From Macrostomum lignano (lineage: Eukaryota): 64,000 nt of DNA. This document shows positions 4,562-53,964 of this stretch, one piece after another; position 1 is the first letter of the stretch; each line of letters starts with the position of its first letter. The stretch lies in NCBI GenBank assembly GCA_002269645.1, contig NIVC01003208.1, forward strand, positions 1-64,000, written 5' to 3'. The notes beneath the pieces were generated by a model. That model made no database searches. It was not told the DNA's origin and saw only the letters and a program-made list of their open reading frames with translations. Position numbers and translations under genes: made by a program.

Positions 4562-7500
4562 TCAAAGCGCGATCTCGTCCTCCTCGGCGAGCCCCTGGGC
4601 GGAGAGGGTCCGCTGCACCGAGTCGCTCTCATAAACAGAGTCGTGCTTGGCCAGGATGCGCAGCAGGGGGCGCAGCTTCAGCCACCACTGCGTGTCCGGC
4701 CGCTGCATGCGCAGCTTGAAGTCCGTGTCGCTCAGCAGCTCCGTCACCGGCCTGACGCTCGTGCCGCGCTTCGTGATGCCCACGATGGCCGCGCTGGCCG
4801 TGGCCGATTCGTCCACGGTGGCCGGGCGGCCGGCCGCGCCGCCGGACAGCACCCGAGAGAACCAGTCGGCGGCCTTCACGCCGAACTTCGTGGCCAAGTT
4901 GCGGTCGTAAGGCGATGGCGTGCCGCCTGTGGGAGCAGATCGGGGAGGTGGCTTTCGGGACCCACCTCAGGAAGCAGTCAGACCTACATTAGGAAGCAAT
5001 CAGGACCCACTTTAGGATTCAGTCAGACCTACATTAGGAAGCAGTCAGGACCCTCTTCAGGATTCAGTCAGACCTACATTAGGAAGCAGTCAGGACCCAC
5101 TTTAGGATTCAGTCAGACCTACATTAGGAAGCAGTCAGTACCCACTTCAGGAATCAGTCAGTACCCACTTCAGGAATCAGTCAGTACCCACTTCAGGAAT
5201 CAGTCAGTACCCACTTCAGGAATCAGTCAGTACCCACTTCAGGAAGCAGTCAGTACCCACTTCAGGAAACAGTCAGTACCCACTTCGGGATTTAGTCAGT
5301 ACCCACTTCAGGAAGCAGTCAGTACCCACTTCAGGAAACAGTCAGTACCCACTTCAGGAAGCAGTCAGTACCCACTTCAGGAAGCAGTCAGTACCCACTT
5401 CAGGAATCAGTCAGTACCCACTTTAGGAATCAGTCAGTACCCACTTCAGGAAACAGTCAGTACCCACTTCAGGAAACAGTCAGTACCCACTTCGGGAATC
5501 AGCCAGTACCCACTTCAGGAAGCAGTCAGTACCCACTTCGGGAAACAGTCAGTACCCACTTCAGGAATCAGTCAGTACCCACTTCAGGAAACAGTCAGTA
5601 CCCACTTCAGGAAGCAGTCAGTACCCACTTCAGGAATCAGTCAGTACCCACTTTAGGAAACAGTCAGTACCCACTTCAGGAAACAGTCAGTACCCACTTC
5701 GGGAAACAGTCAGTACCCACTTCGGGAAACAGTCAGTACCCACTTTAGGAATCAGTCAGTACCCACTTCAGGAAACAGTCAGTACCCACTTCAGGAAACA
5801 GTCAGTACCCACTTTGGGAAACAGTCAGTACCCACTTCAGGAATCAGTCAGTACCCACTTCAGGAAACAGTCAGTACCCACTTCAGGAAACAGTCAGTAC
5901 CCACTTCGGGAAACAGTCAGTACCCACTTCGGGAAACAGTCAGTACCCACTTCGGGATTTAGTCAGTACCCACTTCAGGAAACAGTCAGGACCCACTTCA
6001 GGAAGCAGTCAGTACCCACTTCAGGAATCAGTCAGTACCCACTTCGGGATTTAGTCAGTACCCACTTCAGGAAGCAGTCAGTACCCACTTCAGGAATCAG
6101 TCAGTACCCACTTTAGGAATCAGTCAGTACCCACTTCAGGAAACAGTCAGTACCCACTTCGGGAAACAGTCAGTACCCACTTCAGGAATCAGTCAGTACC
6201 CACTTCGGGAAACAGTCAGTACCCACTTCGGGAAACAGTCAGTACCCACTTCAGGAATCAGTCAGTACCCACTTCGGGAAACAGTCAGTACCCACTTCAG
6301 GAAACAGTCAGTACCCACTTCGGGAAACAGTCAGTACCCACTTCAGGAAACAGTCAGTACCCACTTCAGGAAACAGTCAGTACCCACTTCGGGAAACAGT
6401 CAGTACCCACTTCGGGATTTAGTCAGTACCCACTTCAGGAAACAGTCAGTACCCACTTCGGGAAACAGTCAGTACCCACTTCAGGAAACAGTCAGTACCC
6501 ACTTCAGGAAACAGTCAGTACCCACTTCGGGAAACAGTCAGTACCCACTTCGGGATTTAGTCAGTACCCACTTCAGGAAACAGTCAGGACCCACTGCAGG
6601 AAAAATCCAGGACCCACTGCAGGAAGCAGTCAGGGCACACTTCAGCCGGTACTTCAACAAACAAAGCTGACCAACATCCGAAAGCAAGCGGGCTGACCAA
6701 AATTTACAGCCAAGAAACAGCGCCCGACACCCACCCTGCTGCATGTGGCCCAGCACGTTGGAACGGCAGTCGAAGACGCCCTTGCCCTCCTCCTTGAAGA
6801 CGCGGTACACAAAGTCAGTCGAGTAGTTCTCGTTGGCGAGCTCGTTGCGCAGGATGAGGCCCCGCTGCAGGCCGCAGTCGTCGTGCATTTTCTGCTTGAG
6901 GTGGCGCACATCGTCCAGCAGCACGGCCAGGTCGAATTTGTCCTCCTTGATGTAGGCAGCGTCCGCACCGCCGGCCAGGCCAGCCAGGGTGGCCAGGTAG
7001 CCGCAGTAGCCGCCCATGGTCTCCACCACGAACACGCGGCGCTGGGTGCCAACGGCGCTCTGCTTGATCTTGTCGATGATCTGCGTGATCTCATTGAGCG
7101 CGGTGTCAGCCCCGATGGAGAAGTCCGTGCCGGGCACGTTGTTGGAGATTGTGCAGGGCACCACCAGCATGGGCACGGCCAGGGCTGGCTGGCTTGGCCG
7201 GGCCTGGAACAGCTGCACCAGCGAGCTGAAGGCCTCGAAGCCGCCGATCAGCAGCATGCCTCTCAGGTTCTCCACCTTGGACAGGGCCTCGGCCACCTGG
7301 GCGGCATTGAATGGCGGCCAGGAAATTACAGGTAGAATCTAAATTGGAAAACTTATGGAAAGGTGGAAGGCGTGCCGACAGTGGGAGAGCTTAGCAGATA
7401 GTGGGAGAGCTTAGCAGATAGTGGGAGAGCTTAGCAGATAGTGGGAAAGCTTAGCAGATAGTGGGAGAGCTTAGCAGATAGTGGGAGAGCTTAGCAGATA

Positions 7501-10500
7501 GTGGGAGAGCTTAGCAGATAGTGGGAGAGCTTAGCAGATAGTGGGAGAGCTTAGCAGATAGTGGGAGAGCTTAGCAGATAGTGGGAGAGCTTAGCAGATA
7601 GTGGGAGAGCTTAGCAGATAGTGGGAGAGCTTAGCAGATAGTGGGAGAGCTTAGCAGATAGTGGGAGAGCTTAGCAGATAGTGGGAGAGCTTAGCAGATA
7701 GTGGGAGAGCTTAGCAGATAGTGGGAGAGCTTAGCAGATAGTGGGAGAGCTTAGCAGATAGTGGGAAAGCTTAGCAGATAGTGGGAGAGCTTAGCAGATA
7801 GTGGGAGAGCTTAGCAGATAGTGGGAGAGCTTAGCAGATAGTGGGAGAGCTTAGCAGATAGTGGGAGAGCTTAGCAGACAGTAGAAGAGCTTAGCAAATT
7901 GTGACAGCTTAGGTAGCAAATCTGCAGCTTCCTGGCAACTCACGGCGGCGATGCCGACCTCCTCCGCGGTGATCCGCTTGGTGCCGAGGCAGCTGCCGCC
8001 GGAGGACGTCAGGCCGGACACGGACTCCCAGCTCAGCGGGCGGAAGCTGGCCTTGACGAGGCCGTCGAAACCGCCGTTGACGCCCAACACGCGGAAGCCG
8101 TTGCTGATGCCGGTGCGGACGAAGGCGCGCACGCAGGCGTTGGCGCCGCAGGCGGGGCGCCGACCATCACGATGAGCAGCGTCGGGCAGCTGTCGCTGCA
8201 GGCGTTGGCGGGCGAGTGCAGCTTCTTCAGGGTCCGGTAGGTGGCCAGGTTGTTGATGAAGGACTTGCCGCGCAGCTCCACGGACTGGGCGTAGTTCTTG
8301 GCCTGGATGGCCTCGTTCACCGCCTTCGTGCGGGCCACGCACTCCACCAGCGGCAGCCGCACAGCCTGCGGCGGAGGGAGGGAAGCGATGGCTTCGGTAA
8401 ACGGTTGTAAGATGCTGGCACCCAGAGATGCTGGTCTGCAGAGATGCTGGCACCCAGAGATGCAGAGATTCACATAGTCTGGCACTCATGGAGATGCTGG
8501 CGCCCAGAGATGCTGGTATTCACAGTCTGGCACTCATAGAGATGCTGGCGCCCAGAGATGCTGGTATTCACAGTCTGGCACTCATAGAGATGCTGGCGCC
8601 CAGAGATGCTGGCACGAGTATTCACAGAGTCTGGCACTCACAGAGATGCTGGCGTCCAGAGATGCTGGCACCCAGAGATGCTGGTATTCACAGAGTCTGG
8701 CACTCATAGAGATCCTGGCACCCAGAGATGCTGGTATTCACAGAGTCTGGCACTCATAGAGAAGCGGGCACTCAGAGTCTAACACTTAGAGAGGCTGGCA
8801 CTCAGAGTCTAACACTCACAGAGGCTGGCACTCACAGGCACAGTCACTCTCAGATGCATGCCATTCAAGAAGTCACAGATTCACCCCTACAACCAGAGGC
8901 GGAAGGAGCCCGGGCGCCTGTGCAGTACCTGATTGGCATCGAGGCTGACAACGATGGATGGCAGCTCCGGGTTCTGGCGGGCGTCCAGCAGGGCCAGCAC
9001 GGCCTCGGCAGCCATACGGCAGCCCAGCAGGCGGTCAAAGGCAGATGGGGCACCGCCACGCTGTACGTGGCCGAGGACGGTGACCCTGGTGTCGTACTTC
9101 AGCTTCTGGCTGATCGTGTCCCGGATGAGGTTGGCGCTGATGGCGTTGCCCTCAGTGTCGATGGCGCCCTCGGCCGCGATGATGATGTTCAACCGCTTGC
9201 CGCGTTGCCGGGCCTGCGGTGGCGAGGGCGGAGCGACTGTCAGTGTGTTGAAGGACAGGGGTTGCATGGTACTGAAGGGCAGGGGTTGCAGGGTACTGAA
9301 GGGCTGGGGTTGCAGGGTACTGAAGGGCTGGGGTTGCAGGGTACTGAAAGGCTGGGGTTGCAGGGTACTGAAGGGCTGGGGTTGCAGGGTACTGAAGGGC
9401 TGGGGTTGCAGGGTACTGAAGGGCAGGGGTCACAGGTTACTGGAGGGCACCGAGGCTCACCTTGATCAGATGGTTGCACATCACATCGGGCCAGTCGGTG
9501 CCCGGAGGCTCCTCAGGGATGAACAGAAAGTCGGCCTCGCAGCACAGGGCGGACACCAGCGCCAGGTAGCCGCAGTGACGGCCCATCACCTCCATGACGA
9601 AGGCACGCTGATGGCTCTGCGCGGTGGTGGCGATGGCGTCGCAGGCCTCGATGATGCGGTGCAGCGCCGAGTCCGTCCCGATGGTCATGTCGGTGCCGCA
9701 GAAGTCGTTGTCGATGGACCCGACCATCCCCGCGATGTGCAGGCTGGCATAGTCGCGCCGCTGCTTCTCTGTGACCGCGCCTTCCTTGAGCAGCTCGTCC
9801 ACCAGGGACGGCCACTCCTGGCGGAACAGGTCCGCTCCTGCGGGGGTGGGGGGTTGTTGGTTCGAAACCGTGCTGTGTTGGCCTTAGCCCGCTGCCTTTT
9901 TACCAGCCTTTCCTATCTCAATCTTCCCTCCCAGCATCTCAATCCGCCCTTCCAGCATCTCAATCCTTACTCCCAGCATCTCAATCCTTACTCCCAGCAT
10001 CTCAATCCTTACTCCCAGCATCTCAATCCTTACTCCCAGCATCTCAATCCTTACTCCCAGCATCTCAATCCTTACTCCCAGCATCTCAATCCGCCTTCCC
10101 TTTCTCAGCATCTCAATCCTCCCCCAGCCCACCGGTCAGTGAGCCGTCACCGCCGATGACCACCAGGTTGGTGATGCCGCGGCGGATGAGGTTCCTAGCG
10201 GCCTGTAGGCGGCCCTCGCGAGTCCGGAAGCGGGCGGAGCGGGCGGAGCCGATGACGGTGCCGCCCAGCTGGATGATGCCGGACACGAGGCCCCAATTGG
10301 CCTCCTTGATCATCTCCTGGCCGTCTTCGCCGTCGCCGATCATCCCTTCGTAGCCCTCGTAGATAAGATAGACCCGGAAGCCGCAGTAGAGGCCCATGCG
10401 GACCACGGCCCTGATGGCGGAGTTCATGCCCTGCGAGTCGCCGCCGGAGGTGAAGACGGCCAAAGCCGGCCGCTCGTGCAGCGGCAGCATGCGGAGCGCG

Positions 10501-10783
10501 TCCGTGACTGCGGAAGTCACGGCGGGGATTTGAGGATGAGCGGCAGGTGGGAACTGGCGCAAATGAAGTGTGTGCCGGACTAGCGGCAGTCTCCGATATT
10601 AAGATGAGTTCGCTAGTTGATGCAGAACACTCGAGACATGAACAACACGAACTGCACGCACGCTACGTGTCTGCGTAAACTGTGAAGCGCCTTGGCGATT
10701 AGAAAAAGTTCAAGCTGGACATTCATGATGTAAAAACTGTTACTTTCTGTACTCGTGCTCTGCACCAGGACTGAACAGCCCGC

Positions 10784-10816
<33 letters not shown>

Positions 10817-12895
10817 GCTGAAAGTGCGGGCAATTGCGCAAGGACCGCTAGCAGTAGGGGAGGAACTTTAAAAATGCGTCAAGTTATGCAGATTTTATTT
10901 TATCTGGAATTCTTTGCTTTTCTGGCACTAAACTGACACTTCTGCTGTTTGCCTTTTCTGGCACTAAACTGACACTTCTGCTGTTTGCCTTTTCTGGCAC
11001 TAAACTGACACCTCTGCTGTTTGCCTTTTCTGGCACTAAACTGACACTTCTGCTGTTTGCCTTTTCTGGCACTAAACTGACACCTCTGCTGTTTGCCTTT
11101 TCTGGCACTAAACTGACACCTCTGCTGTTATTGCCTTTTCTGGCACTAAACTGACACCTCTGCTGTTATTGCCTTTTCTGGCACTAAACTGACACCTCTG
11201 CTGTTTGCCTTTTCTGGCACTAAACTGACACCTCTGCTGTTTGCCTTTTCTGGCACTAAACTGACACTTCTGCTGTTTGCCTTTTCTGGCACTAAACTGA
11301 CACCTCTGCTGTTTGCCTTTTCTGGCACTAAACTGACACTTCTGCTGTTTGCCTTTTCTGGCACTAAACTGACACTTCTGCTGTTTGCCTTTTCTGGCAC
11401 TAAACTGACACCTCTGCTGTTTGCCTTTTCTGGCACTAAACTGACACCTCTGCTGTTTGCCTTTTCTGGCACTAAACTGACACCTCTGCTGTTTGCCTTT
11501 TCTGGCACTAAACTGACACCTCTGCTGTTTGCCTTTTCTGGCACTAAACTGACACCTCTACTGTTATTGCCTTTTCTGGCACTAAACTGACACCTCTGCT
11601 GTTTGCCTTTTCTGGCACTAAACTGACACCTCTGCTGTTTGCCTTTTCTGGCACTAAACTGACACCTCTGCTGTTTGCCTTTTCTGGCACTAAACTGACA
11701 CCTCTACTGTTATTGCCTTTTCTGGCACTAAACTGACACCTCTGCTGTTTGCCTTTTCTGGCACTAAACTGACACCTCTGGTGTTTGCCTTTTCTGGCAC
11801 TAAACTGACACCTCTGCTGTTATTGCCTTTTCTGGCACTAAACTGACACTTCTGCTGTTTGCCTTTTCTGGCACTAAACTGACACCTCTGCTGTTTGCCT
11901 TTTCTGGCACTAAACCATATAGTTTATAGTACAAAGCGATAATCCAAAAAGTGAGAAATTTGTCAATAGAAGTGCTCAAATAGGTTTCTGTTGCATTTAA
12001 AAGCGACTTTCATCATGTTGGCGCACTACACCCTGTTACTGCCAGCGGTAATGGCGATCACACTTCACACCAGTGTGCAAAGTGCACAGTGCCACAGTAC
12101 CCAGACTATCAGCAGTGCAGTATTGAAACTTGCCCTTCATGTAGATGGGAAGCCCCAGCCTGCCATCTGGGAGACAGTTAGCATCAGAGTAGGGAATGGG
12201 ATTATTATGGTGTAAATGCATGCTTCGGCTGCTGTCTACAACTGATTCATAACTGAGCGATTGGCTAAGAAGGTAAATATAAAACTGTCAATCTATTATT
12301 TTTAAATACTTTAAAAAATGAAGCACAGCACACTGCAGAAGATAAACATTGATTAGTGCAGAAAATAGGTTTATATCAGCTATTAAAAAGGCTTTACTAA
12401 TATTAAAAAAACAAAAACTCATTAGAAATAATAGGTTATCAAGGCATTTAAATAAGGAGGGCTATACCATGAGCAGCATGCATCTGGTAACTCAATTATT
12501 AATTCGTGATAATCAATTTGAAACATTGAGATGTGACAAATACCTATGGCTGAAATATGTGTAGAGCAGTTTTCATGGTCAGTAATTTACATTTCAATTC
12601 ATAGCAATGAACTTCAATTCAATGCATTTCATACATTAGTAAGTCAAATGCAAGGCCAAAAGATCTGACAAAAACCAATCTAAACATGCTTTTAAAGAGC
12701 AAAATTTGCAGCAATACAACTTTGCAGGAAAACACAGGATCAGAATCCCAAGCAATTTCAACACTCTGTCATTACTACTTCAAGTAGTTATATTTTATTT
12801 ATTTCGATTAGAAGATAATACAATATGGCAATGTATACATACAATCAACAAAAAGCAAACTTACACGACTTCCTTGTACTAGCCTGGTATGCCAT
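4562..12895 (-). CDS. PFK: ATP-dependent 6-phosphofructokinase (eukaryotic two-domain type), ~827 aa if the 1-bp frameshift is corrected
   Basis: Well-supported exons 10133-10507, 9461-9837, 8929-9213, 7944-8365, 6735-7296, 4562-4926; tentative 5' exons 12865-12895 and 12101-12166. Motifs [96 protein letters not shown]. Exon 7944-8365 is 422 nt, one base short of frame. Confidence 0.95.
4965..6630. repeat. 23-bp minisatellite in the last PFK intron
   Basis: Unit CAGTCAGTACCCACTTCAGGAA(T/G/A); a longer related variant at 4965-5140. Confidence 0.95.
7381..7895. repeat. 20-bp minisatellite in a PFK intron, ~26 copies
   Basis: Unit GTGGGAGAGCTTAGCAGATA, near perfect. Confidence 0.95.
8410..8850. 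repeat. Degenerate ~48-bp minisatellite in a PFK intron
   Basis: GAGATGCTGGCGCCCAGAGATGCTGGTATTCACAGTCTGGCACTCATA-like units. Confidence 0.8.
9250..9430. repeat. 24-bp minisatellite in a PFK intron
   Basis: Unit GGGCTGGGGTTGCAGGGTACTGAA. Confidence 0.9.
9930..10120. repeat. 21-bp minisatellite in a PFK intron
   Basis: Unit CAGCATCTCAATCCTTACTCC. Confidence 0.9.
10785..10816. repeat. (CAGA)n microsatellite
   Basis: CAGACAGACAGA run. Confidence 0.9.
10915..11915. repeat. 36-bp minisatellite (39-bp variants), in the probable second PFK coding intron
   Basis: Unit GCCTTTTCTGGCACTAAACTGACACCTCTGCTGTTT. Confidence 0.95.
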
Positions 12896-15599
12896 GGTGC
12901 AAGCTGAAACAGTAGGATTATATAATTTTGCTGAGACATTGTGTAAAAATATGAGACATTGCAAAAGTTTCTAGATTGCATTTACTGCAATAACAGGAGA
13001 TTTAAATGAGTTGAAATTTTAGCCACAACTCTCCTGCATATCTACTCTATTGAAATGGTAAAACTGCAAAAACAATTTGAAATGCTTAGCTCATTAGCTC
13101 ATAACTCCTAAGCTTATACTCATGAAACTCATATAAGGGCTATTAAAAAAGTTCTGCATATTGGTTAATAACTTCAGAAGTTCATGCACTAATGTGCTAA
13201 TATTTAGCATGCACAATCTATGATATCTGCTTATTCAGTTTCAATTTTCTGCCTTAATATATAATAATTATTATTATTAGGCTGTTTAGTACAAAAGCTA
13301 AAGGAGTCCCTACACATACCCTCAATTATCCCAGCTAATGCTAGTACCCATTTACAGCTAGGTGAACTGAAGCAATGCAGAGTTAAGTGTTGTTCAAGGA
13401 CATAAATTGTTCCCAATGGGTTTGGAATCAAATCCTTAACTTTTTAGTTGTAAGTCTAATGGCATAGCTGGCATAGCACCATTTCATACCTTTGTTTTGA
13501 GTCACTATAGTAAGCCAAGTTCACTGTATCTCACTCATATGACTCATATGACTCAACTGTAGGTCATTTGGCTAATACTTTGAATATGCGGACATACCTA
13601 TCTCTTAAGTGGTTATGTATCAAATTTTATTTCATTGCTAACTTATTTTACAATGAAGATACACAATGGTATTGACTTTGACAACCTGCTACTTTGGCTT
13701 AATAACAATATAAGGGGAAAATTGAGACCCTAAGTAAGCAATTATCATAGTCTATGTGTCAAATACTAGCTCATAAAAAACATATATATGCTTTTAAAGT
13801 TATTAAACAAACTAGAAATTTTCTAACAGCCTTTATAAACTATTTTTTTAAGTTAAAAACAGGCAATTTTTTAATACTTAAAATATAACTCCAATCTGTT
13901 CTACAAGTATCAGGCTTATAAAACTGTATATAAGCATACTGAATACACAAGTTAATTTAGTCTATATATATTATTAGACCCTATAAGTCCTAGGATTTAT
14001 ACTTAAATAGGAACTTCAATAAGGGTCCCATGGCTTGCCAATATTCAAAAGGCAAATTTGAATAAAAATATACTTTTTTTCAAATGAAAAACTTTGCAGT
14101 ATAATGATATGGATTAGAAAGCAAATATTAATTAGAAATAAAAGAAAAAGTAAAACCTAAAAAACAAAAAACAAAAATAGGACTGGCTTTCAATGCCAAT
14201 GGGATTATAATAAACTATATTATCTTTTTCGTAGAAAAGAATAAGGCCCTTGGCCTTATTAAAAACAAAAAATGTTTCAGACACTAGTATAAAAGTTTAT
14301 TATAAAATACAAAGCCTTTATGTTAAAAATTTCAAACTATTTTTTCTATTCTTAACTAATCTGTTTATTTGATATACTTAAAATTTTAATAAACTTCTTA
14401 CTATTTTGAATTTTTCAACATTGTTGGTAATGGTGTTTGTTAGCATTGTTGTCCTAATTAGGAAACAACATTTGTATGCTTAAATGTTTATTATAAGAAG
14501 ACACAAATTATAGACAAATGGCAATAGCAATAAATAATTAAATTATTTTTGATATTTTCTTCTTATTATGCATTTAAGTTTAAGGCTAATTTCTGTAAGC
14601 ATTGTTACAAAGCTTTTGGGTTTTATAGTTGTATTGGATTCATTTTTAATAATAGTTAAAAAAAAGGATTAAAAAAGTTTAAAAAATATAATTAGTTTAA
14701 GTTAATTTTTAGAATATTTTTTACAATATCTAAGACTAAGTCAAGATGTTAATTGCAAGATAGGCCTAATATATTATCTAAATAAGCTAAGAATAAGACT
14801 AGGATTAGGTAGGATTATAGGCCTATATAGACATATTGCAGGCATAAACTTATTAATATTAGGTAAGATTATAAAAGTTTAAGGCGGCCTAGATATTTAA
14901 ATCAAGACATCTTATTTTATTTGTACAAAAACCTATCCTCCTATTAGTATGATAGACAAACTAGGCCTAGATAGTTATAGTTATAGTTATGTCAAGTTCT
15001 ATATATTACATATTATATTTTGCTTATTTGACAAAGCTATTTGAATAATGAATAGGTTAACTTAAAGGAGCTTGCTGCAACCAAATGCAATTGTCAACAA
15101 ACATGTCGGCATAGCCATGCCAATAGGACATAGGTATGTCGTTTTGACTTCGTTTTAGGAAATTGTGTCTGTGTAGTTATTTAGTTTTGTGTGTGATATG
15201 AAATATTACATCTACGATCTATGAAATATTACATAGACCTACATAATTTGTCATTTGGTTTTCAGCTTACTAATTTTACACTCGATGAAAAATGATAAAT
15301 AGCTAAATAGCCTAATAGTAGTAAATTGCTCAGGCAAACAGCCTGTTTGGCCAGTAAGAATAAGAACTACTTTTCGTCCTAAGATTTATTGTGAACAGGC
15401 TATTTATCGTAATAAGAATATATACTAAAATTATAGTAATTGTATTTATTGTAAAAAGATTTATTGTAAGAAATATTAAAATGAAATTTTTCAAATTTTC
15501 AATAATGCAGTTTTCAAAACGTTATAAAACTCTGTATACTCCTAGTTTTCTCATGCAGAGCGCCGAGAAAAAAATATAAACTCTTTCTTTATTAACTGA

Positions 15600-16250
15600 G
15601 GTCATTTACCTGCCTAAACTTGAGGTTGCTTTTTAGTTTGTTATTTGAAGACAAAAATTCACAGCTGATTATTCAATGATTTCAAATTTTGCTCGGAAGT
15701 GTTTTTAATGAATTTGTTCAAATTGAACTGACTTATGATAATCGATTAGTGTCTGGGTAAAGTCCTGCATGTCAATTTTCAGCGACAGAGAGCAAGAAGA
15801 AGTACTCGAAATCGAATATCAATTTATTACAATGATTGTAAAGCAAACTGTAAAAAATCCTTTCAATCTGTAGCCGTAATTTTTTTTAAGTCGGTTTATC
15901 TCCTGAATGATATTTCTTCTGTAAAAAATCATGGCGTTTGGTGCTTTAAAAGCAGAGATTTTTGTTATTTCCGAATATCGATCTTGAATATCGCTCGGGG
16001 AATCCCTGCATTATTATTTCTCCTGCAAGTTGAGTTGACATTGTTATCATTAACTCAAATAAAAATAAAAGCTTTATTTTATTTAACGTTTTAGTTTTTA
16101 GCTTTTCTCACCTCAATCCTTCTAATTTCTAAAGTTGTGCTATTTAATTTAGATAAGTCAAACTTTAGAATTGAACATTGAAGGCCTTTATTATTCCGTC
16201 CGTTATTTAATGCTAGCTAAATTAAATAATGCAACACCAACTGGTCACTA
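15600..16250. promoter_or_regulatory. Candidate bidirectional promoter for PFK (-) and CK1a (+): CpG-retaining patch
   Basis: About 15 CG in 15661-16210 versus 2 CG in 12870-14884 at visually similar AT content. Lies between divergent genes. Minus-strand donor CAG|GTAAAT at 15610/15609 could end a PFK 5'UTR exon. Inference only. Confidence 0.4.
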
Positions 16251-17629
16251 AATAAACAATTTGAGTTTTTGAAGCTGAGAAAAGAATTTGATTTTATCGT
16301 AAAAGAAGCTAAGGTTTTTAGTAAGTAAAAACCAAAAATATGATTAAGCCTAGACCTATTTGAATTCAATTGACATATATCAATATCAATATATGGGCAT
16401 CGTTTTCCAGAAAACCTAGCAAAATCAACAGCTACAAAAGTTGAGTATCTAGGCTTAGGACCTTTTCCCAGACATAAAGAACAATTTAGGATATGATTTT
16501 GCATCTTAGTGCCAAGGTACTTAGGCCTATGTACTTAGGATGCTATATAGTATCCTGACTTTCCAAATTGTATTCTGAAATTAGACCTAAGCTGTGATTT
16601 CATAAATATAATTGCAATTCAGCTCTAAGAGTCCAAGTTTTCTTATAGTTTCACTACATATTGTCTTATCTATATGGCACACTAACATTCAATTCAAAAT
16701 AGCTGGCCTATATTTAATAAGTGCAGCCCATTTTGGCAAAGGAATTTTTTGCAAAAGATGCTTTAGGCCTAGTAAAAGTGATTTTTTAGTTTAAATCAAT
16801 ATATATTTTGGTGAAAGAAAGTGACAGTTTAGTGAAAAGATTGGCTATATAATACATATATAATTACAAATATAGGCCCCCCCTATATTTGGTGAATCGG
16901 TGATTGAAGCCTTAAAAAATTATTCATTGCTGCAAATTAAATTATTTGCAGTTAGAAAATTTAAAAACTCATGCTATGGTAGTTATGGTATTTACATGCA
17001 ATCTATTGATATGCAATCAATTGATTAGGGATAATAATGGTGTGTAACTTTTGGTTTTAAAGTTGTTCCACTAGTTCTAGTTCCTAAAATCGTACTTTGA
17101 AATCCTGTTGTAATGGAAGGGCATCCAATAAAACAACTATATTATTAGCCATTATGTTAAGTATTTTTTGCCATTATTGACTTTTGTCAAAAATTCTTTC
17201 ACCAAAATGGATTGAAACCTATTTAAAAAGTTTAATAATTAGGAAGTCTAATAACCTATTAAGTTTGCTATCTTATTATTAGGCAAGTAGGTATTCATGT
17301 CATTTTTATTAATATAAAATTGTAGAAAAGATTTCTACTTTTTTTAGTTCTTAGTTACTAAATATAATTTTTAATGAATTTAAACTAGGCCTAAATAAGC
17401 CTATTTAAAAATAAAAAATAATACAAAAATAGCCTACTTCATTAGTTAGGTCCACTATAGCATAGTTTAAATAAATTAGCCATAAAATAGCAGTCTAAAG
17501 GTAATAGCAAAGAAGCAAATACTCTAAAGTAACAAGAGTTAATATAATGTGCATCATTGCCTCCCACTATTTTTGGATATTTGGAGCCAAAGTCAGAGTA
17601 ATTTGAGGTATTAATATGAGTTTATACAT

Positions 17630-18192
17630 CATACATGCGCAACTGTTGGCCAACCTGGCCAATCCAGCCAATGTAAATTGTGGTGGACCAGGGGTAAGTT
17701 GCAAAAATGCCCACCCCAAAGAATACAGACGTAGTACTAATTAGATGATGAGGCATTTAGCCCTTATAAAACAGTTATAGTTACTCCTGCAGTTTACCCA
17801 AAATTGTGTTTTTTTGCTTTAGGGTTTCTTTCACAGGTAAATTGTATTTTTGGTCAAAAAGTAAGTTGCATGGCCAGTGTAAATCAGGGGGGTTGCACAT
17901 GTATCTTATACATGTGTAACTGGCAACCCCCCATTTATATTGGCCATGTGCTATGTGACTTACTTTTTGACCAAAAATGTAAATAACCTATAAAAAAACA
18001 CTAAAGCAAAATTAATATAATTTTGGGTAAATGGCACAAGTAACTTGACTATCTTATTAAGGCTAAATGCCTCATCAGTTTTTTAGTAATATGTCTATAT
18101 TTTTAGGTGGGCATTTTTGCAACATTTTCCTTGTGCATCATAGTTTATAATTAGCTAGATCTGCTAGGTTAGCCAGCAGTTGTGCATGTATG
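17630..18192. mobile_element. Foldback/MITE-like palindromic element, ~560 bp, possibly TA-flanked (Tc1/mariner-type)
   Basis: 17630-17904 aligns by eye with the reverse complement of 17908-18192 (e.g. GTTGCAAAAATGCCCACC, TGATGAGGCATTTAGCC, TTTACCCAAAATT, ATTTTTGGTCAAAAAGTAAGT); 3-nt loop CTT at 17905-17907; TA at 17632-33 and 18189-90. Confidence 0.85.
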
Positions 18193-19014
18193 TGTGGGCT
18201 ATTTTTAGCTATTCCTACTATTAATGGTATTTGTATATTTATATTGATTTTTTATTTTACTTTTTAATAATATATGCTAATATGCATTGGCAAACTATAC
18301 TATAAATAAAAACTTTTTCTAGTCAAGAAGCCTAAACCTACTATTTTATCTAGAAATTATTTGGCAATTGGATTGAAAAAGTATATTAATATAAATATTA
18401 ATATAACTGTTCATTCTATGGGACACCCTACTGAACTCTGCTTTATAAATTCCTAGGCATGCTCAATGGGATTCTAGAGACTGATAGCCAAGTGCTATTA
18501 GGTTTCATTGTACTATACCTGCCTCCCTCCCTCCCAATTCCCCTATGCTGCACTTAGTGCTGGCAATGGCAGCCTTTATACACTTAAATTACCAATGGCA
18601 TGCAAAACACTTGGCCTATGTTATTGAGTATATATTGCCTTACATACCTGAATATGTGTGTCTCATAAAAGTTTAGTAAATTAAATAAAATCATAGTATG
18701 GTAAATTGTATTGAATCAAAATGCATTGTATGGCATTTGTATGCTTTGAGGGTGAGAATAGGAAAAATCCTGTTTACTTTAGCTCAGTGGAATAAAAATA
18801 ATTGTTCCTACTGTTTGAAATAGTGTAATATATGCTCATTGGCTAGCATAATTTTTGTTGTAATTAATCTGTCCAAAGCACTATATGTGATAATGGGGGT
18901 ATATAAATCTTATCATAATTACTTATCCCACTGTTGCTGCTGTGAGCCCCAGGCCCCTCCCCGCCCAGCTGCTAGGAGACCCCTGAGAACAGCTCGAAAC
19001 TGGCCAATCCGCAG

Positions 19015-22000
19015 ATGGACCCGCAGGTGGTTAGGAAGACGGACTTCGTTGTCGGGGGCAAGTACAAGCTGACCCGCAAGATTGGCAGCGGCTCCTTTGG
19101 CGAGATCTACCTTGGCGTGAGCATCATCAATGGCGAGGAGGTGGCCGTGAAGCTGGAACCTGTCACTGCGCGTCATCCCCAGCTGCTGTATGAGAGCAAG
19201 GTGTACAAAATTCTGCAGGACGGCATTGGCATTCCCAGCGTCAGGTGCGGGCTGCTTCTGTCTGCATTCGCTGTGTCCTCTGTCTGCATTCTGTATCCTG
19301 TCTGCATTCTGTGTTCTCTGCCTGCGTTCTCTGTGTCCTGTCTGCATTCTGTATCCTGTCTGCATTCTGTGTTCTCTGCCTGCGTTCTCTGTGTCCTCTG
19401 TCTGCATTCTGTATCCTGTCTGCATTCTGTGTTCTCTGCCTGCGTTCTCTGTGTCCTGTCTGCATTCTGTGTATCCTCTGTCTGCATTCTCTGTGTTCTC
19501 TGCCTGCATTCTCTGTGTTCTCTGTCTGCATTCTCTGTCCTCTGTCTGCATTCTGTGTTCTCTGTCTGCATTCTCTGTGTTCTCTGCCTGCATTCTCTGT
19601 GTTCTCTGTCTGCATTCTCTGTGTTCTCTGCCTGCATTCTCTGTGTTCTCTGTCTGCATTCTGTGTATCCTCTGTCTGCATTCTCTGTGTTCTCTGTCTG
19701 CATTCTCTGTGTTCTCTGTCTGCATTCTCTGTGTCCTCTGTCTGCATTCTGTGTTCTCTGTCTGCATTCTCTGTGTCCTGTCTGCATTCTGTGTATCCTC
19801 TGTCTGCATTCTCTGTGTTCTCTGCCTGCATTCTCTGTGTTCTCTGTCTGCATTCTCTGTCCTCTGTCTGCATTCTGTGTTCTCTGTCTGCATTCTCTGT
19901 GTTCTCTGTCTGCATTCTGTGTATCCTCTGTCTGCATTCTCTGTGTTCTCTGTCTGCATTCTGTGTATCCTCTGTCTGCATTCTCTGTGTTCTCTGCCTG
20001 CATTCTCTGTGTTCTCTGTCTGCATTCTCTGTGTTCTCTGCCTGCATTCTCTGTGTTCTCTGTCTGCATTCTCTGTGTTCTCTGCCTGCATTCTCTGTGT
20101 TCTCTGTCTGCATTCTCTGTGTCCTCTGTCTGCATTCTGTGTTCTCTGTCTGCATTCTCTGTGTTCTCTGCCTGCATTCTCTGTGTTCTCTGTCTGCATT
20201 CTCTGTCCTCTGTCTGCATTCTGTGTTCTCTGTCTGCATTCTCTGTGTTCTCTGTCTGCATTCTCTGTGTCCTCTGTCTGCATTCTGTGTCCTCTGTCTG
20301 CATTCTGTGTCCTCTGTCTGCATTCTCTGTGTCCTCTGTCTGACGTGCCTGAGCCGTGTCCCATCAGTGCCTCACACAGCGCTGCCCCTGACCCGCAGGT
20401 GGTACGGCCAGGACGGCGTGAAGAACCAGTACAACTGCCTGGTGATGGACCTGCTGGGCCCCAGCCTGGAGGACCTGTTCACCTTCTGCTCCCGCCGCTT
20501 CACTATGAAGACCGTGCTGATGCTGGCCGACCAGATGCTGTGCCGCATCGAGTTCGTGCACAACAAGAACTTCATTCACAGGTGAGGCGCATCGGTCTCT
20601 GCGCATTAGGGTTCATTTGCTGAGCGCCTATTTTTATCTTACGCTGCATTTCCTGACAGACAGCTCGGCAATCGGGCTGGGCTTTCCTGCCTGTTATCTG
20701 CGCCTTCCGCCCCGCACAATATGCGCTGCGAACTCCAGGCCTTCTAATTGAGTCCCCCTGCTCTGCCTCTCAGCTCTGCCCCCTGCATGCCTGCCCGCGT
20801 CCAAGTAATTTTTAATTACCGATTTGGGACGCCGGTCCCAGCTGACCCCCCCCCATCTGCCCTGGAATGACGCGCCGAACCTTAATTCGCATCTGTTGCG
20901 CAAGCTGTCTGTGATTGCGCAGTGATGGGCTTTTGCGCCGTCTGCTCTCGGTGTACTTTTATACTCGTAGTTTGCTATGGTGAAAGCTCACCTATGACTG
21001 GCACTGCCCCATTATAACCCCATGGCCTTCCTCATAACCCATCATGACCCATTGCCATCCCTCATAACCCATTTCCATCCCATTATGACCTATCGCCACC
21101 CCTCATGACCCATTTCCATCCAATTATGACCCATCGCCACCCCTCATGACCATCGCCATCCCTCATGACTCATCGCCATCCATAATGACTCATCGCCATC
21201 CTTAATGACTCATCGCCATCCATAATGACTCATCGCCATCCATAATGACCCATCGCCATCCCGCATGACCCATCGCCATCCCGCATGACCCATCGCCATC
21301 CCTCATGGCCCATCGCCATCCATAATGACCCATCGCCATCCCTCATGACTCATCGCCATCCCTCATGACCCATCGCCATCCCGCATGACCCATCGCCATC
21401 CCTCATGACCCATCGCCATCCATGACTCATCGCCATCCATAATGACCCATCGCCATCCCTCATGACCCATCGCCATCCCTCATGACCCATCGCCATCCCC
21501 AGGGACATCAAGCCCGACAACTTCCTGATGGGCATCGGGCGGCACTGCAACAAGCTGTTCCTGGTGGACTTCGGCCTGGCCAAGAAGTACCGGGACTCGC
21601 GCACCAAAACGCACATCCCCTACAGGGACGACAAGAACCTCACCGGCACCGCCCGCTACGCCTCCGTGAACGCCCACGCCGGCATCGAGCAGTCGCGTCG
21701 AGACGATCTCGAGAGTCTGGGTTACGTTTTCATGTACTTCCTCAGGTCTTCTCTGCCCTGGCAGGGGCTGAAGGTAGGTGTGCTCAGGAGCGACCCTCGC
21801 TAACCAGAGGTTGTGCTCATGACCCGCTAAATATTCAGGCTCACCCAAATCCCATTGGGTTTGGCGCCACCCAGACACCTAGATTCGATGGGGTTTGGCG
21901 CCACCCAGACACCTAGATCCCATTGGGTTTGGCGCCACCCAGACACCTAGATCCCATTGAGTTTGGCGCCACCTAGACACCCAGATCCCATTGGGTTTGG

Positions 22001-24508
22001 CGCCACCCAGACACCCAGATCCCATTGGGTTTGGCGCCACCCAGACACCCAGATTCGATGGGGTTTGGCGCCACCCAGACACCTAGATCCCATTGGGTTT
22101 GGCGCCACCCAGACACCCAGATTCGATGGGGTTTGGCGCCACCCAGACACCTACATCCCATTGGGTTTGGCGCCACCCAGACACCCAGATTCGATGGGGT
22201 TTGGCGCCACCCAGACACCTAGATCCCATTGGGTTTGGCGCCACCCAGACACCTAGATCCCATTGGGTTTGGCGCCACCCAGACACCCAGATTCGATGGG
22301 GTTTGGCGCCACCCAGACACCTAGATCCCATTGGGTTTGGCGCCACCCAGACACCCAGATTCGATGGGGTTTGGCGCCACCTAGACACCTAGATCCCATT
22401 GGGTTTGACGCCACCCAGACACCTAGATCCTATTGGGTTTGGCGCCACCCAGACACCTAGATCCCATTGAGTTTGGCGCCACCTAGACACCCAGATCCCA
22501 TTGGGTTTGGTGCCACCCAGACACCCAGATCCCATTGGGTTTGGCGCCACCCAGACACCCAGATTCGATGGGGTTTGGCGCCACCCAGACACCTAGATCC
22601 CATTGGGTTTGGCGCCACCTAGACACCCAGATTTGAAGGGGTTTGGCGCCCCCTGCTCAGTTCCTGACATCTATTGCACTGTCTAGCCAGCATTCGGTGC
22701 CGCATCATTCTGCAAAAATTCGATCAGCCTGCCCGAGCACCCAGCCGCGCCATCGCAGCCAGACTGCTGCTCTATTACTCGCCCTCATTCCTTTGCCACC
22801 CCCTGCACTCCAAGATGGAAAGCGTGGCGCTGCATGCAGAAAAGTTTTCAGCTGTTCCACTGAGCCCAGGGCGCGGTTACCCCCCCCCCGCCCTCTGCTC
22901 GCCTCTCCGCCATTGTGCCGCCACCCCCTCCCAGATACTTGGCTGCTGCTATCTGTAGCCCAGCTTCTTCCGCCCATCATCCAGCTGTTGTATTAGTACT
23001 CTGGCGGCTGGGTGGGTGCGCTGCGCTCAGGCCATCCAAGCCTGCCCCTGTCTGTCTGTCTGTCTTTCATTCAATTCAGCTCTTTGCCCACTGCTTCAAT
23101 TGTGTCTTTCATTGCCCTGCGCATGTCTGCCGCACAGTCTGACCAGCCGAAACTGCGCTTGATGTGACAATCTGTGACGCACATGTCTGTCTGTGGATTT
23201 CAGGGGCTTAACTTTCTTGTGAAGATTAAATCCTCTCTTGAGTTCGATGAGTTCGATGTTTAGCTGAAAATCCTATATCCTTTATCATATAACCATATCG
23301 GTCTCTCCCATCTGTCTCACTGTCATCTGTATCACCTATTTATCTCACTCATATCTGTTTAACTCCCACCAGTCTCACTCCCACCAGTCTCACTCCCAAC
23401 TGTCTCACTCCCACCAGTCTCACTCCCACCAGTCTCACTCCCACCAGTCTCACTCCCATCTGTCTCACTCCCACCAGTCTCACTCCCACCTGTCTCCCTC
23501 CCACCAGTCTCACTCCCAACTGTCTCACTCCCAACTGTCTCACTCCCACCGGTCTCACTCCCACCAGTCTCACTCCCACCAGTCTCACTCCCATCTGTCT
23601 CACTCCCACCAGTCTCACTCCCACCTGTCTCCCTCCCACCAGTCTCCCTCCCATCTGTCTCACTCCCATCTGTCTCACTCCCATCTGTCTCACTCCCATC
23701 TGTCTCACTCCCATCTGTCTCACTCCCACCAGTCTCACTCCCACCATTCTCCCCCCATCTGTCTCACTCCCACCAGTCTCCCTCCCATCTGTCTCACTCC
23801 CATCTGTCTCACTCCCACCAGTCTACCTCCCATCTGTCTCACTCCCACCAGTCTCACTCCCACCATTCTCCCCCCATCTGTCTCACTCCCACCAGTCTCC
23901 CCCCCCCATCTGTCTCACTCCAACCAGTCTCACTCCCACAGTCTCCCTCCCATCTGTCTCACTCCCACCAGTCTCACTCCCACCAGTCTCCCTCCCACCT
24001 GTCTCCCTCCCACCAGTCTCCCTCCCATCTGTCTCACTCCCACCAGTCTCACTCCCACCAGTCTCCCTCCCACCAGTCTCCCCCCATCTGTCTAACTCCC
24101 ACCAGTCTCACTCCCATCTGTCTCACTCCCACCAGTCTCCCTCCCACCTGTCTCACTCCCACCTGTCTGACCCCACCAGCCTCACTCTCACCCAGCGCCA
24201 CACCCGCCACCCAGGCGAACAACAAGAAGCAGAAATACGAGCGCATCTACGAGAAGAAGGTGTCCACGCCCATCGAGAGCCTGACCAAGGGCTACCCGCC
24301 CGAGTTCAGCCGCTACCTCAGCTACTGCCGCAACCTGAAGTTCGAAGAGGCCCCGGATTACCGCTGGCTGCGCGAGAACTTCCGCATCCTGTTCCGCACG
24401 CTCAACTTCGTGTTCGACTACGTGTTCGACTGGACCCTGCTGAAGCAGCGGGCCACCACGGCCGCCAGCAGCGCCGGCCTGGCCGCCAACCAGCCCGCGC
24501 ACAGGTGA
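19015..24508 (+). CDS. CSNK1A1: Casein kinase I isoform alpha, ~325 aa
   Basis: Exons 19015-19244, 20399-20581, 21503-21773, 24215-24508, phases consistent. [113 protein letters not shown] is diagnostic of the alpha class. Confidence 0.97.
19255..20342. repeat. 20-22-bp pyrimidine-rich minisatellite filling CK1a intron 1
   Basis: CTCTGTCTGCATTCTCTGTGTT-type units; source of six long repetitive ORFs. Confidence 0.95.
21035..21500. repeat. 20-bp minisatellite in CK1a intron 2, running up to the acceptor AG
   Basis: Unit CATGACCCATCGCCATCCCT; last unit ends CATCCCC-AG|GGAC at 21502. Confidence 0.9.
21848..22640. repeat. 34-bp minisatellite in CK1a intron 3
   Basis: Unit CCCATTGGGTTTGGCGCCACCCAGACACCTAGAT and a TCGATGGG variant. 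Confidence 0.95.
23365..24180. repeat. 15-bp C-rich minisatellite in CK1a intron 3
   Basis: TCTCACTCCCACCAG / TCTCACTCCCATCTG units. Confidence 0.95.
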
Positions 24509-34859: not shown

Positions 34860-37800
34860 GAGACCTCAGCATGGATATAGAGTTCTCACATGAGACCTCA
34901 GTTCACATGAGACCTCAGTTCACCAGAGACCTCAGTTCACCAGAGACCTCAGTTCACATGAGACCTCAGTTCACCAGAGACCTCAGTTCACATGAGACCT
35001 CAGTTCACATGAGACCTCAGTTCACATGAGACCTCAGTTCACCAGAGACCTCAGTTCACATGAGACCTCAGTTCACCAGAGACCTCAGTTCACATGAGAC
35101 CTCAGTTCACATGAGACCTCAGTTCACATGAGACCTCAGTTCACATGAGACCTCAGTTCACCAGAGACCTCAGTTCACCAGAGACCTCAGTTCACATGAG
35201 ACCTCAGTTCACCAGAGACCTCAGCATGGATATAGAGTTCTCACATGAGACCTCAGTTCACATGAGACCTCAGTTCACCAGAGACCTCAGTTCACATGAG
35301 ACCTCAGTTCACCAGAGACCTCAGTTCACATGAGACCTCAGTTCACATGAGACCTCAGTTCACATGAGACCTCAGTTCACCAGAGACCTCAGTTCACATG
35401 AGACCTCAGTTCACCAGAGACCTCAGTTCACATGAGACCTCAGTTCACATGAGACCTCAGTTCACATGAGACCTCAGTTCACCAGAGACCTCAGTTCACA
35501 TGAGACCTCAGTTCACCAGAGACCTCAGTTCACATGAGACCTCAGTTCACCAGAGACCTCAGCATGGATATAGAGTTCTCACATGAGACCTCAGTTCACA
35601 TGAGACCTCAGTTCACATGAGACCTCAGTTCACATGAGACCTCAGTTCACATGAGACCTCAGTTCACCAGAGACCTCAGTTCACCAGAGACCTCAGCATG
35701 GATATAGAGTTCTCACATGAGACCTCAGTTCACATGAGACCTCAGTTCACCAGAGACCTCAGTTCACATGAGACCTCAGTTCACATGAGACCTCAGTTCA
35801 CATGAGACCTCAGTTCACCAGAGACCTCAGTTCACCAGAGACCTCAGCATGGATATAGAGTTCTCACATGAGACCTCAGTTCACATGAGACCTCAGTTCA
35901 CCAGAGACCTCAGTTCACATGAGACCTCAGTTCACCAGAGACCTCAGTTCACATGAGACCTCAGTTCACATGAGACCTCAGTTCACATGAGACCTCAGTT
36001 CACCAGAGACCTCAGTTCACATGAGACCTCAGTTCACCAGAGACCTCAGCATGGATATAGAGTTCTCACATGAGACCTCAGTTCACATGAGACCTCAGTT
36101 CACCAGAGACCTCAGTTCACATGAGACCTCAGTTCACATGAGACCTCAGTTCACCAGAGACCTCAGTTCACATGAGACCTCAGTTCACATGAGACCTCAG
36201 TTCACCAGAGACCTCAGTTCACCAGAGACCTCAGTTCACCAGAGACCTCAGTTCACATGAGACCTCAGTTCACCAGAGACCTCAGTTCACATGAGACCTC
36301 AGTTCACATGAGACCTCAGTTCACATGAGACCTCAGTTCACATGAGACCTCAGTTCACAGAGACCTCAGTTCACCAGAGACCTCAGTTCACATGAGACCT
36401 CAGTTCACCAGAGACCTCAGCATGGATATAGAGTTCTCACATGAGACCTCAGTTCACATGAGACCTCAGTTCACCAGAGACCTCAGTTCACATGAGACCT
36501 CAGTTCACCAGAGACCTCAGTTCACATGAGACCTCAGTTCACATGAGACCTCAGTTCACATGAGACCTCAGTTCACCAGAGACCTCAGTTCACATGAGAC
36601 CTCAGTTCACCAGAGACCTCAGCATGGATATAGAGTTCTCACATGAGACCTCAGTTCACATGAGACCTCAGTTCACCAGAGACCTCAGTTCACATGAGAC
36701 CTCAGTTCACATGAGACCTCAGTTCACATGAGACCTCAGTTCACATGAGACCTCAGTTCACAGAGACCTCAGTTCACCAGAGACCTCAGTTCACAGAGAC
36801 CTCAGTTCACCAGAGACCTCAGCATGGATATAGAGTTCTCACATGAGACCTCAGTTCACATGAGACCTCAGTTCACCAGAGACCTCAGTTCACATGAGAC
36901 CTCAGTTCACCAGAGACCTCAGTTCACATGAGACCTCAGTTCACATGAGACCTCAGTTCACATGAGACCTCAGTTCACCAGAGACCTCAGTTCACATGAG
37001 ACCTCAGTTCACCAGAGACCTCAGCATGGAATAGAGTTCTCACATGAGACCTCAGTTCACATGAGACCTCAGTTCACCAGAGACCTCAGTTCACATGAGA
37101 CCTCAGTTCACCAGAGACCTCAGTTCACCAGAGACCTCAGTTCACATGAGACCTCAGTTCACATGAGACCTCAGTTCACATGAGACCTCAGTTCACCAGA
37201 GACCTCAGTTCACATGAGACCTCAGTTCACCAGAGACCTCAGTTCACATGAGACCTCAGTTCACCAGAGACCTCAGCATGGATATAGAGTTCTCACATGA
37301 GACCTCAGTTCACATGAGACCTCAGTTCACCAGAGACCTCAGTTCACATGAGACCTCAGTTCACCAGAGACCTCAGTTCACATGAGACCTCAGTTCACCA
37401 GAGACCTCAGCATGGATATAGAGTTCTCACATGAGACCTCAGTTCACATGAGACCTCAGTTCACATGAGACCTCAGTTCACAGAGACCTCAGTTCACATG
37501 AGACCTCAGTTCACCAGAGACCTCAGTTCACCAGAGACCTCAGCATGGATATAGAGTTCTCACATGAGACCTCAGTTCACATGAGACCTCAGTTCACCAG
37601 AGACCTCAGTTCACATGAGACCTCAGTTCACCAGAGACCTCAGTTCACATGAGACCTCAGTTCACCAGAGACCTCAGCATGGATATAGAGTTCTCACATG
37701 AGACCTCAGTTCACATGAGACCTCAGTTCACCAGAGACCTCAGTTCACATGAGACCTCAGTTCACCAGAGACCTCAGTTCACCAGAGACCTCAGTTCACC

Positions 37801-48500: not shown

Positions 48501-49590
48501 ATTGGCTCTATGACCTCAATCTATTGGCTCTATTACTGAATCTATTGGCTCTATTACTCAATCTATTGGCTCTATTACTTAATCTATTGGTTCTATTACT
48601 GAATCTATTGGTTCTATTACTGAATCTATTGGTTCTATTACTGAATCTATTGGCTCTATTACTCAATCTATTGGCTTTATGACCTCAATCTATTGGTTCT
48701 ATTACTGAATCTATTGGTTCTATTACTGAATCTATTGGCTCTATTACTCAATCTATTGGCTTTATGACCTCAATCTATTGGTTCTATTACTTAATCTATT
48801 GGTTCTATTACTGAATCTATTGGTTCTATTACTCAATCTATTGGCCTATTACTCAATCTATTGGCTTTATGACCTCAATCTATTGGTTCTATTACTCAAT
48901 CTATTGGCTCTATGACCTTAATCGGTATGCAAGTATGCAAAAATCTGGCGGGACAGCACAGCATCACCGAGCCGCTCACTTGCAGTCGGGCGCGGGGCAC
49001 CAGCGGCAGTCGGGGTCGGCGGCCAGCACCCTGCGCAGGGTGAACAGCTCGTATTTGACTCGCAGCTCCTCGCTGACGATGGCGTTCACGTCTTCCGGAT
49101 GGAGGCGGGCGCTGCAGCTCAGACAGGCTGCTGGGAGGCCCTCCAAGATGGCCAGTCGCAGCGCCGTGGCCAGGCATGGCCGGCAGGCGAAGTGGCCGCA
49201 GTCGGTGATCATGTCCGGGAACTGTCCCACCGGCAGTCGTTCGGCGCACACCGGACACTCAGCCAGACCGTCCGCGTCCGCCGCGGCCGCAGCGGGTGTC
49301 ACAGTGACGGCCACCGTCGACGAGGCGGAAGTTCCGGCCGCGCCGCCAGCGGCGCTGGAGTCGCCGGGCTGCTGAGAGGAGCGCCCTACTGGCTGTCGCA
49401 CCGAGGAGGCGGCCGAGGAGCACTTCGGCTTGCGGCCGCTGCTCCCGCTGCTGCTGCTGCCGCCGCCACTAAAGAAGTTGCCAACCGCGTAGAGCACCGA
49501 GTTGGGCCTCCGGCGCTGCTTCAAGGAGCCGCCGCTGGGGCCGCCGACAGTCTCCGCCGGGGCAGCAGGGGATTTGGTTCTGGACAGCAT
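45526..49590 (-). CDS. RNF19: RBR-family E3 ubiquitin ligase, RNF19A/B (Dorfin) type, ~550 aa
   Basis: Exons 48980-49590, 47892-48306, 46598-47130, 45526-45619, phases consistent. RING1 CPVC...CGHFACRPC...CLSC; [28 protein letters not shown]...[10 protein letters not shown]; RING2 KQCPRC...DGSCNHMKC...EFCWLC; diagnostic [40 protein letters not shown] and [17 protein letters not shown] region. Confidence 0.95.
45645..46572. repeat. 32-bp minisatellite in RNF19 intron 3
   Basis: Unit CTGAGTGACCTGCCAGCCCGCACCCTCACTGG. Confidence 0.95.
47215..47835. repeat. 22-bp minisatellite in RNF19 intron 2
   Basis: Unit GGGTGACCGAATCTGGGGATC(T/C). Confidence 0.95.
48400..48920. repeat. 21/22-bp minisatellite in RNF19 intron 1
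   Basis: ATGACCTCAATCTATTGGCTCT and ATTACTGAATCTATTGGTTCT units. Confidence 0.9.
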
Positions 49591-53800: not shown

Positions 53801-53964
53801 TGTGACAGGCCTTTCAGCTTTCTCTAGAAATTATCCTACTAATTGCCACCAACTGTGACAGGTGTATTTCTTCTTACTAAAATTTCTATTACTGACACTA
53901 AATTCTGCCTTAATAATTCTAACTGTTTTCTTAGAATATTTTTCTGGGTATCATTCTCGTAGTA

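Follow-up and report, generated by a model that had tools for sequence, protein, structure and literature searches.

Genomes in which CpG-depleted DNA alternates with DNA that has kept its CpGs have been described in several lineages. Vertebrate bulk DNA typically has a CpG observed/expected ratio (o/e) of about 0.2, and the non-methylated islands within it, which include those at divergent housekeeping genes, retain CpG over about 1 kb between flanks that have lost this dinucleotide specifically. Ciona, oyster and insects have DNMT1/DNMT3 and mosaic methylation directed at gene bodies, with CpG-poor and CpG-replete DNA side by side (PMC7343188, PMC9246332). Methylation has been retargeted to non-genic or transposon DNA in the chaetognath Paraspadella gotoi, ctenophores and early nematodes, and also in a centipede and a mealybug (PMC12460157, PMC7343188), and the chaetognaths, ctenophores and early nematodes also trans-splice (PMC12460157). 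In fungi, the isochores left by repeat-induced point mutation (RIP) are sharp AT-rich blocks between GC-rich gene blocks. The flatworm Macrostomum lignano retains DNMT1 and DNMT3 and has low global 5-methylcytosine (5mC) (PMC11292947, PMC10658182), while the methylation pattern of free-living flatworms is undescribed (PMC9246332). The present analysis concerns an AT-rich block at positions 12300-18950 of a 64,000-nucleotide stretch of M. lignano DNA, hereafter the window, taken from contig NIVC01003208.1 (assembly GCA_002269645.1; identity 100%, window coordinates being those of the record). The block has a GC content of about 29% and occupies the spacer region of head-to-head genes for 6-phosphofructokinase (PFK) and casein kinase I alpha (CK1-alpha, here also CK1).

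The original prediction, made by eye, was that this block consists of CpG-void domains on both sides of a CpG-retaining core, and the depletion was confirmed as real, strong and replicated. Together, the two flanks contain 11 CpG against about 119 expected, with 6 against 54.9 in the left flank (12300-15000; o/e 0.11) and 5 against 64.5 in the right flank (16301-18950; o/e 0.08), whereas the core (15001-16300) has 26 against 28.6 (o/e 0.91). GC content is unchanged across the block, at 29.7% in the core and 28.5-31.2% in the flanks. A maximum-likelihood scan set the core limits at 15100-16300, and the features are delimited here as a left flank at 12300-15099, a core at 15100-16401 and a right flank at 16402-18940; subregion 12906-15099 of the left flank has 3 CpG where 41.8 are expected. 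The hand counts behind the prediction were exact, with 2 CpG in 12870-14884 (at 13589 and 14230) and 15 in 15661-16210. For comparison across the window, non-satellite 300-bp windows were classed as void, as one of two cores (the second belongs to another AT-rich block, at 50900-55600), or as other sequence with GC below 45%. Void windows held 13 CpG against 197 expected (Poisson P = 3e-66); CpG o/e was 0.07, 0.65 and 0.82 in the three classes, and the CpG/GpC ratio 0.04, 0.48 and 0.58 (Fisher P = 2e-15 for void versus cores, 8e-32 for void versus other low-GC windows). The claim that CpG o/e is lower here than in AT-matched DNA elsewhere was also borne out, as a control at 56051-57200 (GC 35%) has 30 CpG against 34 expected. 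Parts of L010, the locus of a CK1 paralogue, are likewise AT-rich and CpG-replete, so that composition alone is not the cause of the void. The same architecture was found in L005 (NIVC01001215.1), a homeologous copy of the block about 1% diverged from it, where the left flank, core and right flank have 6, 27 and 2 CpG against 57.7, 29.1 and 30.6 expected.

The loss is restricted to CpG. In the voids, ACG, CCG, GCG and TCG each stand at 0.05-0.07 of expectation, and equal loss in the four NCG contexts indicates a process that reads CpG and no further context, a pattern that would be the signature of one such as methylation by DNMT1/3. The ratio (CpA+TpG)/(ApC+GpT) is 1.27-1.47 in the voids, where RIP gives values below about 1.03, so CpA was not targeted; TpA/ApT is 0.98-1.08, against a RIP threshold of >0.89. 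RIP was rejected because CpA/TpG is not depleted and all NCG contexts were lost equally, and APOBEC-like or TCG-specific decay because of the same equal NCG loss, TCA and TCT being just mildly low. GpC lies 1.5-1.8-fold above expectation across the whole first block. The products expected of CpG decay are CpA and TpG, and for these (CA/TG) the o/e reaches 1.14 in the voids, compared with 0.98 in the cores, where full decay would contribute about 0.19; this signal is compatible with CpG decay but weak. The description of the domains as TpA-rich did not hold, since TpA o/e is 0.97-1.04, which is the expectation, and is high only by comparison with the remainder of the window (0.71). The word CTAG is indeed abundant, about 2-fold over the base-composition expectation, but the standout word is instead the 8-bp palindrome TAGGCCTA, which the window carries 8 times where 0.76 occurrences would be expected (at 14761, 14818, 14962, 16522, 16764, 17386, 52417 and 56634). 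All of these lie in or beside AT-rich DNA, three on either side of the first core, and 7 further copies occur in the AT-rich block of L001, a homeolog of the second block (L001 11709-16387). GGCC is 5.5-fold above expectation in void DNA.

The arrangement thus resembles a vertebrate non-methylated island in the CpG specificity of the loss, the length of the CpG-retaining stretch, the depleted flanks and the divergent housekeeping genes on either side. It differs in that the island has 30% GC and the depleted background is limited to AT-rich spacer; unlike in vertebrate genomes, gene bodies have an o/e of about 1 and the flanks fall to 0.07. Measured against the classical definition of a CpG island, the o/e of the core (0.91) exceeds the required 0.6 over at least 200-500 bp, and its G+C content (29.7%) falls well short of the required 50-55%. 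The likeness to RIP isochores lies in the sharp AT-rich blocks between GC-rich gene blocks and in a TpA/ApT of about 1.05; the present case differs in being an animal, in affecting unique rather than repeated DNA, in leaving CpA/TpG undepleted (1.27-1.47) and in a loss limited to CpG. With mosaic invertebrate methylation it shares the juxtaposition of CpG-poor and CpG-replete DNA and the presence of DNMT1/DNMT3, but the polarity is reversed, since housekeeping exons are replete and the non-exonic DNA upstream of them is depleted. CpG o/e is 0.88 in the coding sequence (CDS) of CK1 and 1.00 in that of PFK, so that the exon CpG depletion left by gene-body methylation is absent from both and the suggestion of conventional invertebrate gene-body targeting fails. 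The retargeted methylomes are closer, in that the genes of M. lignano appear, from their CpG content, to be unmethylated and non-genic DNA would be the target, and M. lignano shares spliced leader (SL) trans-splicing with chaetognaths and nematodes. It departs from them in that the depleted DNA cannot be recognised as transposon sequence and the single clear retroelement has kept its CpGs, and in that the footprint is read from sequence only.

The genes on either side are divergent housekeeping genes, as predicted: PFK on the minus strand (4565-12903) and CK1-alpha on the plus strand (19015-24508). PFK exon 1 (12865-12903, ATG at 12895) sits 600 bp inside the left flank, with an acceptor AG at 12905-12904; the junction reads ctactgtttcag/CTTGCACCATGG, with the splice at 12904/12903. 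The annotated PFK CDS (12901-8033, 5'-partial) begins 2 nt past this acceptor, after the cag that ends at the 12904/12903 junction, and the mature 5' end therefore lies directly 3' of an AG, as in SL trans-spliced genes. Positions 12300-12864 are the 5' part of PFK intron 1 (12864 to 10508), and the remainder of the left flank (12906-15099), upstream of the acceptor, is presumed outron or spacer. On the other side, GC content rises from 32% to 70% inside 50 bp at 18940, where a GC-rich CK1 5' untranslated region begins (18941-19014). The only AG dinucleotides at this edge, at 18943-18944 and 18949-18950, are the candidate SL acceptors, and the right flank (16402-18940) is presumed CK1 outron or spacer. 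Two CK1 transcript contigs from a related Macrostomum in the Logan collection start with TTGCATG and GCATG, and the Macrostomum SL ends in ...CAATTTATTGCATG (PMC5173321), so these 5-7 nt correspond to an SL remnant, seen on CK1 transcripts of the related species only. In the orthologous Logan transcript (L008), TTGCATG is followed by sequence that matches the window from about 18931 up to and including the ATG, ungapped at the AT-to-GC edge. These alignments make it probable that CK1 receives the SL by trans-splicing at this edge (18944/18950); trans-splicing affects about 39% of the genes of M. lignano (PMC5730564).

Since both mature mRNAs appear to start at acceptors that face the block, the primary transcripts would start within it, and with the PFK acceptor inside one flank and the CK1 acceptor at the edge of the other, the flanks would be at least partly outron or first intron. 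The core is the sole CpG-retaining stretch between the PFK and CK1 acceptors and is the best candidate for a shared bidirectional promoter of the two genes, as well as for a hypomethylated island. Near its edges lies a 20-nt inverted repeat, 75% complementary (15254-15273 and 16318-16337), that bears outward-facing donor-like sites, TTAGTAAG(C/T); the arrangement may be fortuitous, given how often sites of this type occur in this DNA. The core-edge donor-like sites were set aside, as were a TATA box at 18901 and an AATAAA at 50906, since motifs of this kind occur every few hundred bases.

A second AT-rich CpG-void block (50900-55600) bears on how general the pattern is. Its left end follows the stop codon (50825-50827) of PAA52617.1, a plus-strand gene for a 151-aa protein, and no annotated gene follows from there to 60827. 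The three segments of 51001-55600 have, in order, 1, 13 and 0 CpG against 55, 28 and 20 expected, the middle count being that of a CpG-retaining segment at 53700-54441. A copy of this block 0.5% diverged (L003) has the identical architecture, including 53700-54441. In another copy, L001 (NIVC01000571.1), the void extends over the full 4.8 kb, with 6 CpG against 96.5 expected, and the segment corresponding to 53700-54441, the second 'core', is missing. This segment has short ends resembling terminal inverted repeats and GTGC microhomology on both sides, and the difference between the copies may be an insertion or a deletion. As the voids are common to the homeologs, the depletion is older than homeolog divergence.

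The reading preferred here is that AT-rich, non-exonic DNA has a history of CpG methylation in the germ line, with unmethylated islands in its midst, and a probability of roughly 0.5 is given to it on the basis of these footprints. Under this scenario, the flanks, made up of first intron, the presumed outron of SL trans-spliced pre-mRNAs and spacer, would long have been CpG-methylated in the germ line, and deamination of 5mC would have cost them about 93% of their CpG sites. The 1.3 kb in the centre would have stayed unmethylated, like a non-methylated island, and most likely represents the bidirectional promoter, while the GC-rich exons and minisatellite-filled introns would also have been unmethylated and so kept their CpGs. 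The same decay would have hit AT-rich blocks away from gene 5' ends too, in which case its target would be a class of sequence or chromatin rather than the first few kb of transcription units. Both methylation as the cause and hypomethylation of the core are inferred from base composition. A more far-reaching version can be advanced only tentatively: that M. lignano has an inverted mosaic methylome, with dense ancient germline methylation solely in AT-rich outron and spacer DNA, unmethylated AT-rich promoter islands and no gene-body methylation, its low global 5mC being due to CpG loss. Targets that had mutated their own CpGs away would explain that low level, and methylated outrons would tie 5mC to SL trans-splicing.

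Several points weigh against this interpretation. The CpA/TpG excess is small and noisy, and outrons in this block would be 2.2-2.5 kb, which is long. Between the window and L005, 2 of 7 left-flank CpG sites differ (other sites differ at 1.0%), compared with 3 of 28 in the core, where 25 of 28 are common to both copies; the direction fits faster decay in the flank, and the difference is not significant, there being few sites. The 'core' of the second block may be an insertion too young to have decayed, in which case a core would not have to represent a protected promoter. In genic DNA, CpG hypermutability could be hidden by strong GC-biased gene conversion. Lastly, the window's sole recognisable retroelement, a 5'-truncated and frameshifted fragment of the type without long terminal repeats (non-LTR) at 57144-58498, is CpG-replete, so a simple rule of methylating the parasites does not fit.

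The first alternative, and the form in which the idea was originally put, is that methylation is a matter of gene bodies and is confined to the first few kb (outron and first intron) of each transcription unit to either side of a bidirectional promoter that stays unmethylated. Part of what this proposes is supported by the first block: the loss is CpG-specific and context-free, DNMT1 and DNMT3 are present, the two mature mRNAs seem to have their 5' ends at acceptors directed towards the block, and the core is centrally placed. In addition, CpG o/e in PFK intron 1 steps down towards the block from 0.95 to 0.41 to 0.16, tracking local composition, and then to 0.07, and the AT skews of the two flanks are weakly opposite (+0.054, z = 2.4, and -0.034, z = -1.4). 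Confinement to 5' ends could not be upheld as a general principle. The second block lies behind the 3' end of a gene, is devoid of annotated genes and lacks a core in one homeolog; the 680-bp spacer of another divergent pair, the genes for the RBR ligase and the 151-aa protein, is GC-rich and CpG-replete; and the region upstream of the CK1 paralogue at L010 (GC 32-54%, CpG o/e 0.2-0.7) has no sharp void. CK1 exon 1 and every CDS are CpG-replete as well. The void state is thus a property of a class of DNA that is AT-rich, satellite-free and non-exonic, and not of the first kb of transcription units; in the first block this class probably coincides with 5' transcribed sequence. The 5'-confined explanation is considered unlikely.

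A second alternative dispenses with differential methylation: CpG would be hypermutable everywhere and restored by GC-biased and inter-homeolog conversion in recombining genic DNA, so that decay would be visible only in recombination-cold AT-rich DNA, the cores being younger or constrained. Third-position GC content of the coding exons is 0.77-0.97, and the introns are GC-rich and full of minisatellites, as this would predict. At non-CpG sites, the comparison of L001 with window positions 48950-55600 gave 3.7-8.2% divergence in the void and 1.2% in the GC-rich genic flank, where 137 of 145 CpG sites are common to both copies and 7 of the 8 differences are transitions; the lower divergence of the genic flank could reflect constraint or gene conversion between the copies. 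The lack of the second core in one homeolog also fits. On the other hand, global 5mC is reported to be low though most CpGs are genic, CpG-replete AT-rich segments exist, and the first core retains its CpGs while having the GC content and divergence of its flanks. On balance, conversion without differential methylation seems quite improbable.

It is also conceivable that the void is old AT-rich mobile or inserted DNA, CpG-poor on arrival, and that its position at gene 5' ends is incidental. The right flank does contain a decayed foldback resembling a miniature inverted-repeat transposable element (17626-18195, arms 81% identical) that is missing from L005; of the CpGs in one arm two remain, and each of them faces a CpA in the opposite arm. 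L005 also lacks window positions 16397-17149 (753 bp), so large homeolog indels occur in this flank, and TAGGCCTA recurs in the void DNA of both the window and L001. The 753-bp indel has GCAT/CCAT microhomology at its junction and looks like a deletion in L005 rather than an insertion in the window. Beyond the 570-bp foldback relic, the first block has no recognisable mobile element of the sort that a transposon-targeting footprint would require: a Pfam search of the six X-masked frames of 12290-18950 gave no domain, the two AT-rich blocks show no similarity to each other or internally, and stop codons are as dense as in random sequence. Insertion of foreign or transposon-derived sequence, which had been named as a possible refutation of the prediction, thus gained no backing from these searches. 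A nuclear mitochondrial origin was dropped, as there are no tRNAs or open reading frames (ORFs) and stop codons have random density. Even if the inserted-DNA explanation were true it would leave the CpG-free state unexplained, and it is given little credence here. A process other than 5mC, such as selection against CpG or another deaminase, would accommodate the low TpC/GpA of the voids (0.61-0.82) but is very improbable, given equal NCG loss with TCA/TCT only mildly low (not APOBEC-like), undepleted CpA (not RIP-like) and the presence of DNMTs.

The remaining features of the window can be described briefly. The spliced PFK model with two upstream codons (CT) matches PAA52613.1 exactly (468 aa, 'partial'). 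Near 8150 on the minus strand a one-base frame change (...LLIVMVGAP/PAAPTP...) shortens the annotated product to this length, whereas the homeolog PFK encodes 807 aa; the frame change is either an assembly error or the mark of a decaying copy. The CK1-alpha product, encoded by CDS exons 19015-19244, 20399-20581, 21503-21773 and 24215-24508, equals PAA52614.1 exactly and matches CK1 alpha in the PDB (E = 1e-52). A glycine-rich gene at 976-2386 on the plus strand matches the ALK/LTK glycine-rich domain (E = 2e-9), and one ORF of 58 aa occurs in the window alone. The product of the ORF at 50411-50824 shares 97% identity with the 151-aa M. lignano protein, and a PDB search with that protein gave no match. 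Rfam and tRNA scans of the whole window gave no match either.

Minisatellites with units of 10-46 bp fill nearly every intron, including those of PFK, and the GC-rich spacers, and there are none in the two AT-rich blocks; a 17-bp unit is repeated about 510 times over 8.5 kb (34886-43450). Sequence outside the voids had been described as CpG-rich, which was upheld for the exons but not for the satellites, several of which are without any CpG because their repeat units have none. A 21-bp repeat that does contain CpG, TAAGTCGCAATCGAGAGGAAC, has about 7 copies at 55996-56150 and about 30 in L003 (15775-16454), and this gap between copies only 0.5% diverged points to fast change in array length. 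A dense CpG cluster occurs within AT-rich DNA at 56880-56990, just upstream of the non-LTR fragment.

Flatworms are usually regarded as having lost DNA methylation, and M. lignano, with its DNMT1 and DNMT3, is an exception among them. The footprint described here predicts that methylation, where present, lies on AT-rich upstream and spacer DNA and spares exons and central islands. Should the blocks prove unmethylated, some other cause would have to be sought for a loss that is 14-fold and specific to CpG. If the prediction is true, M. lignano would be a spiralian addition to the few animals in which methylation has moved off gene bodies, and the islands would supply candidate promoters for a transgenic model species.

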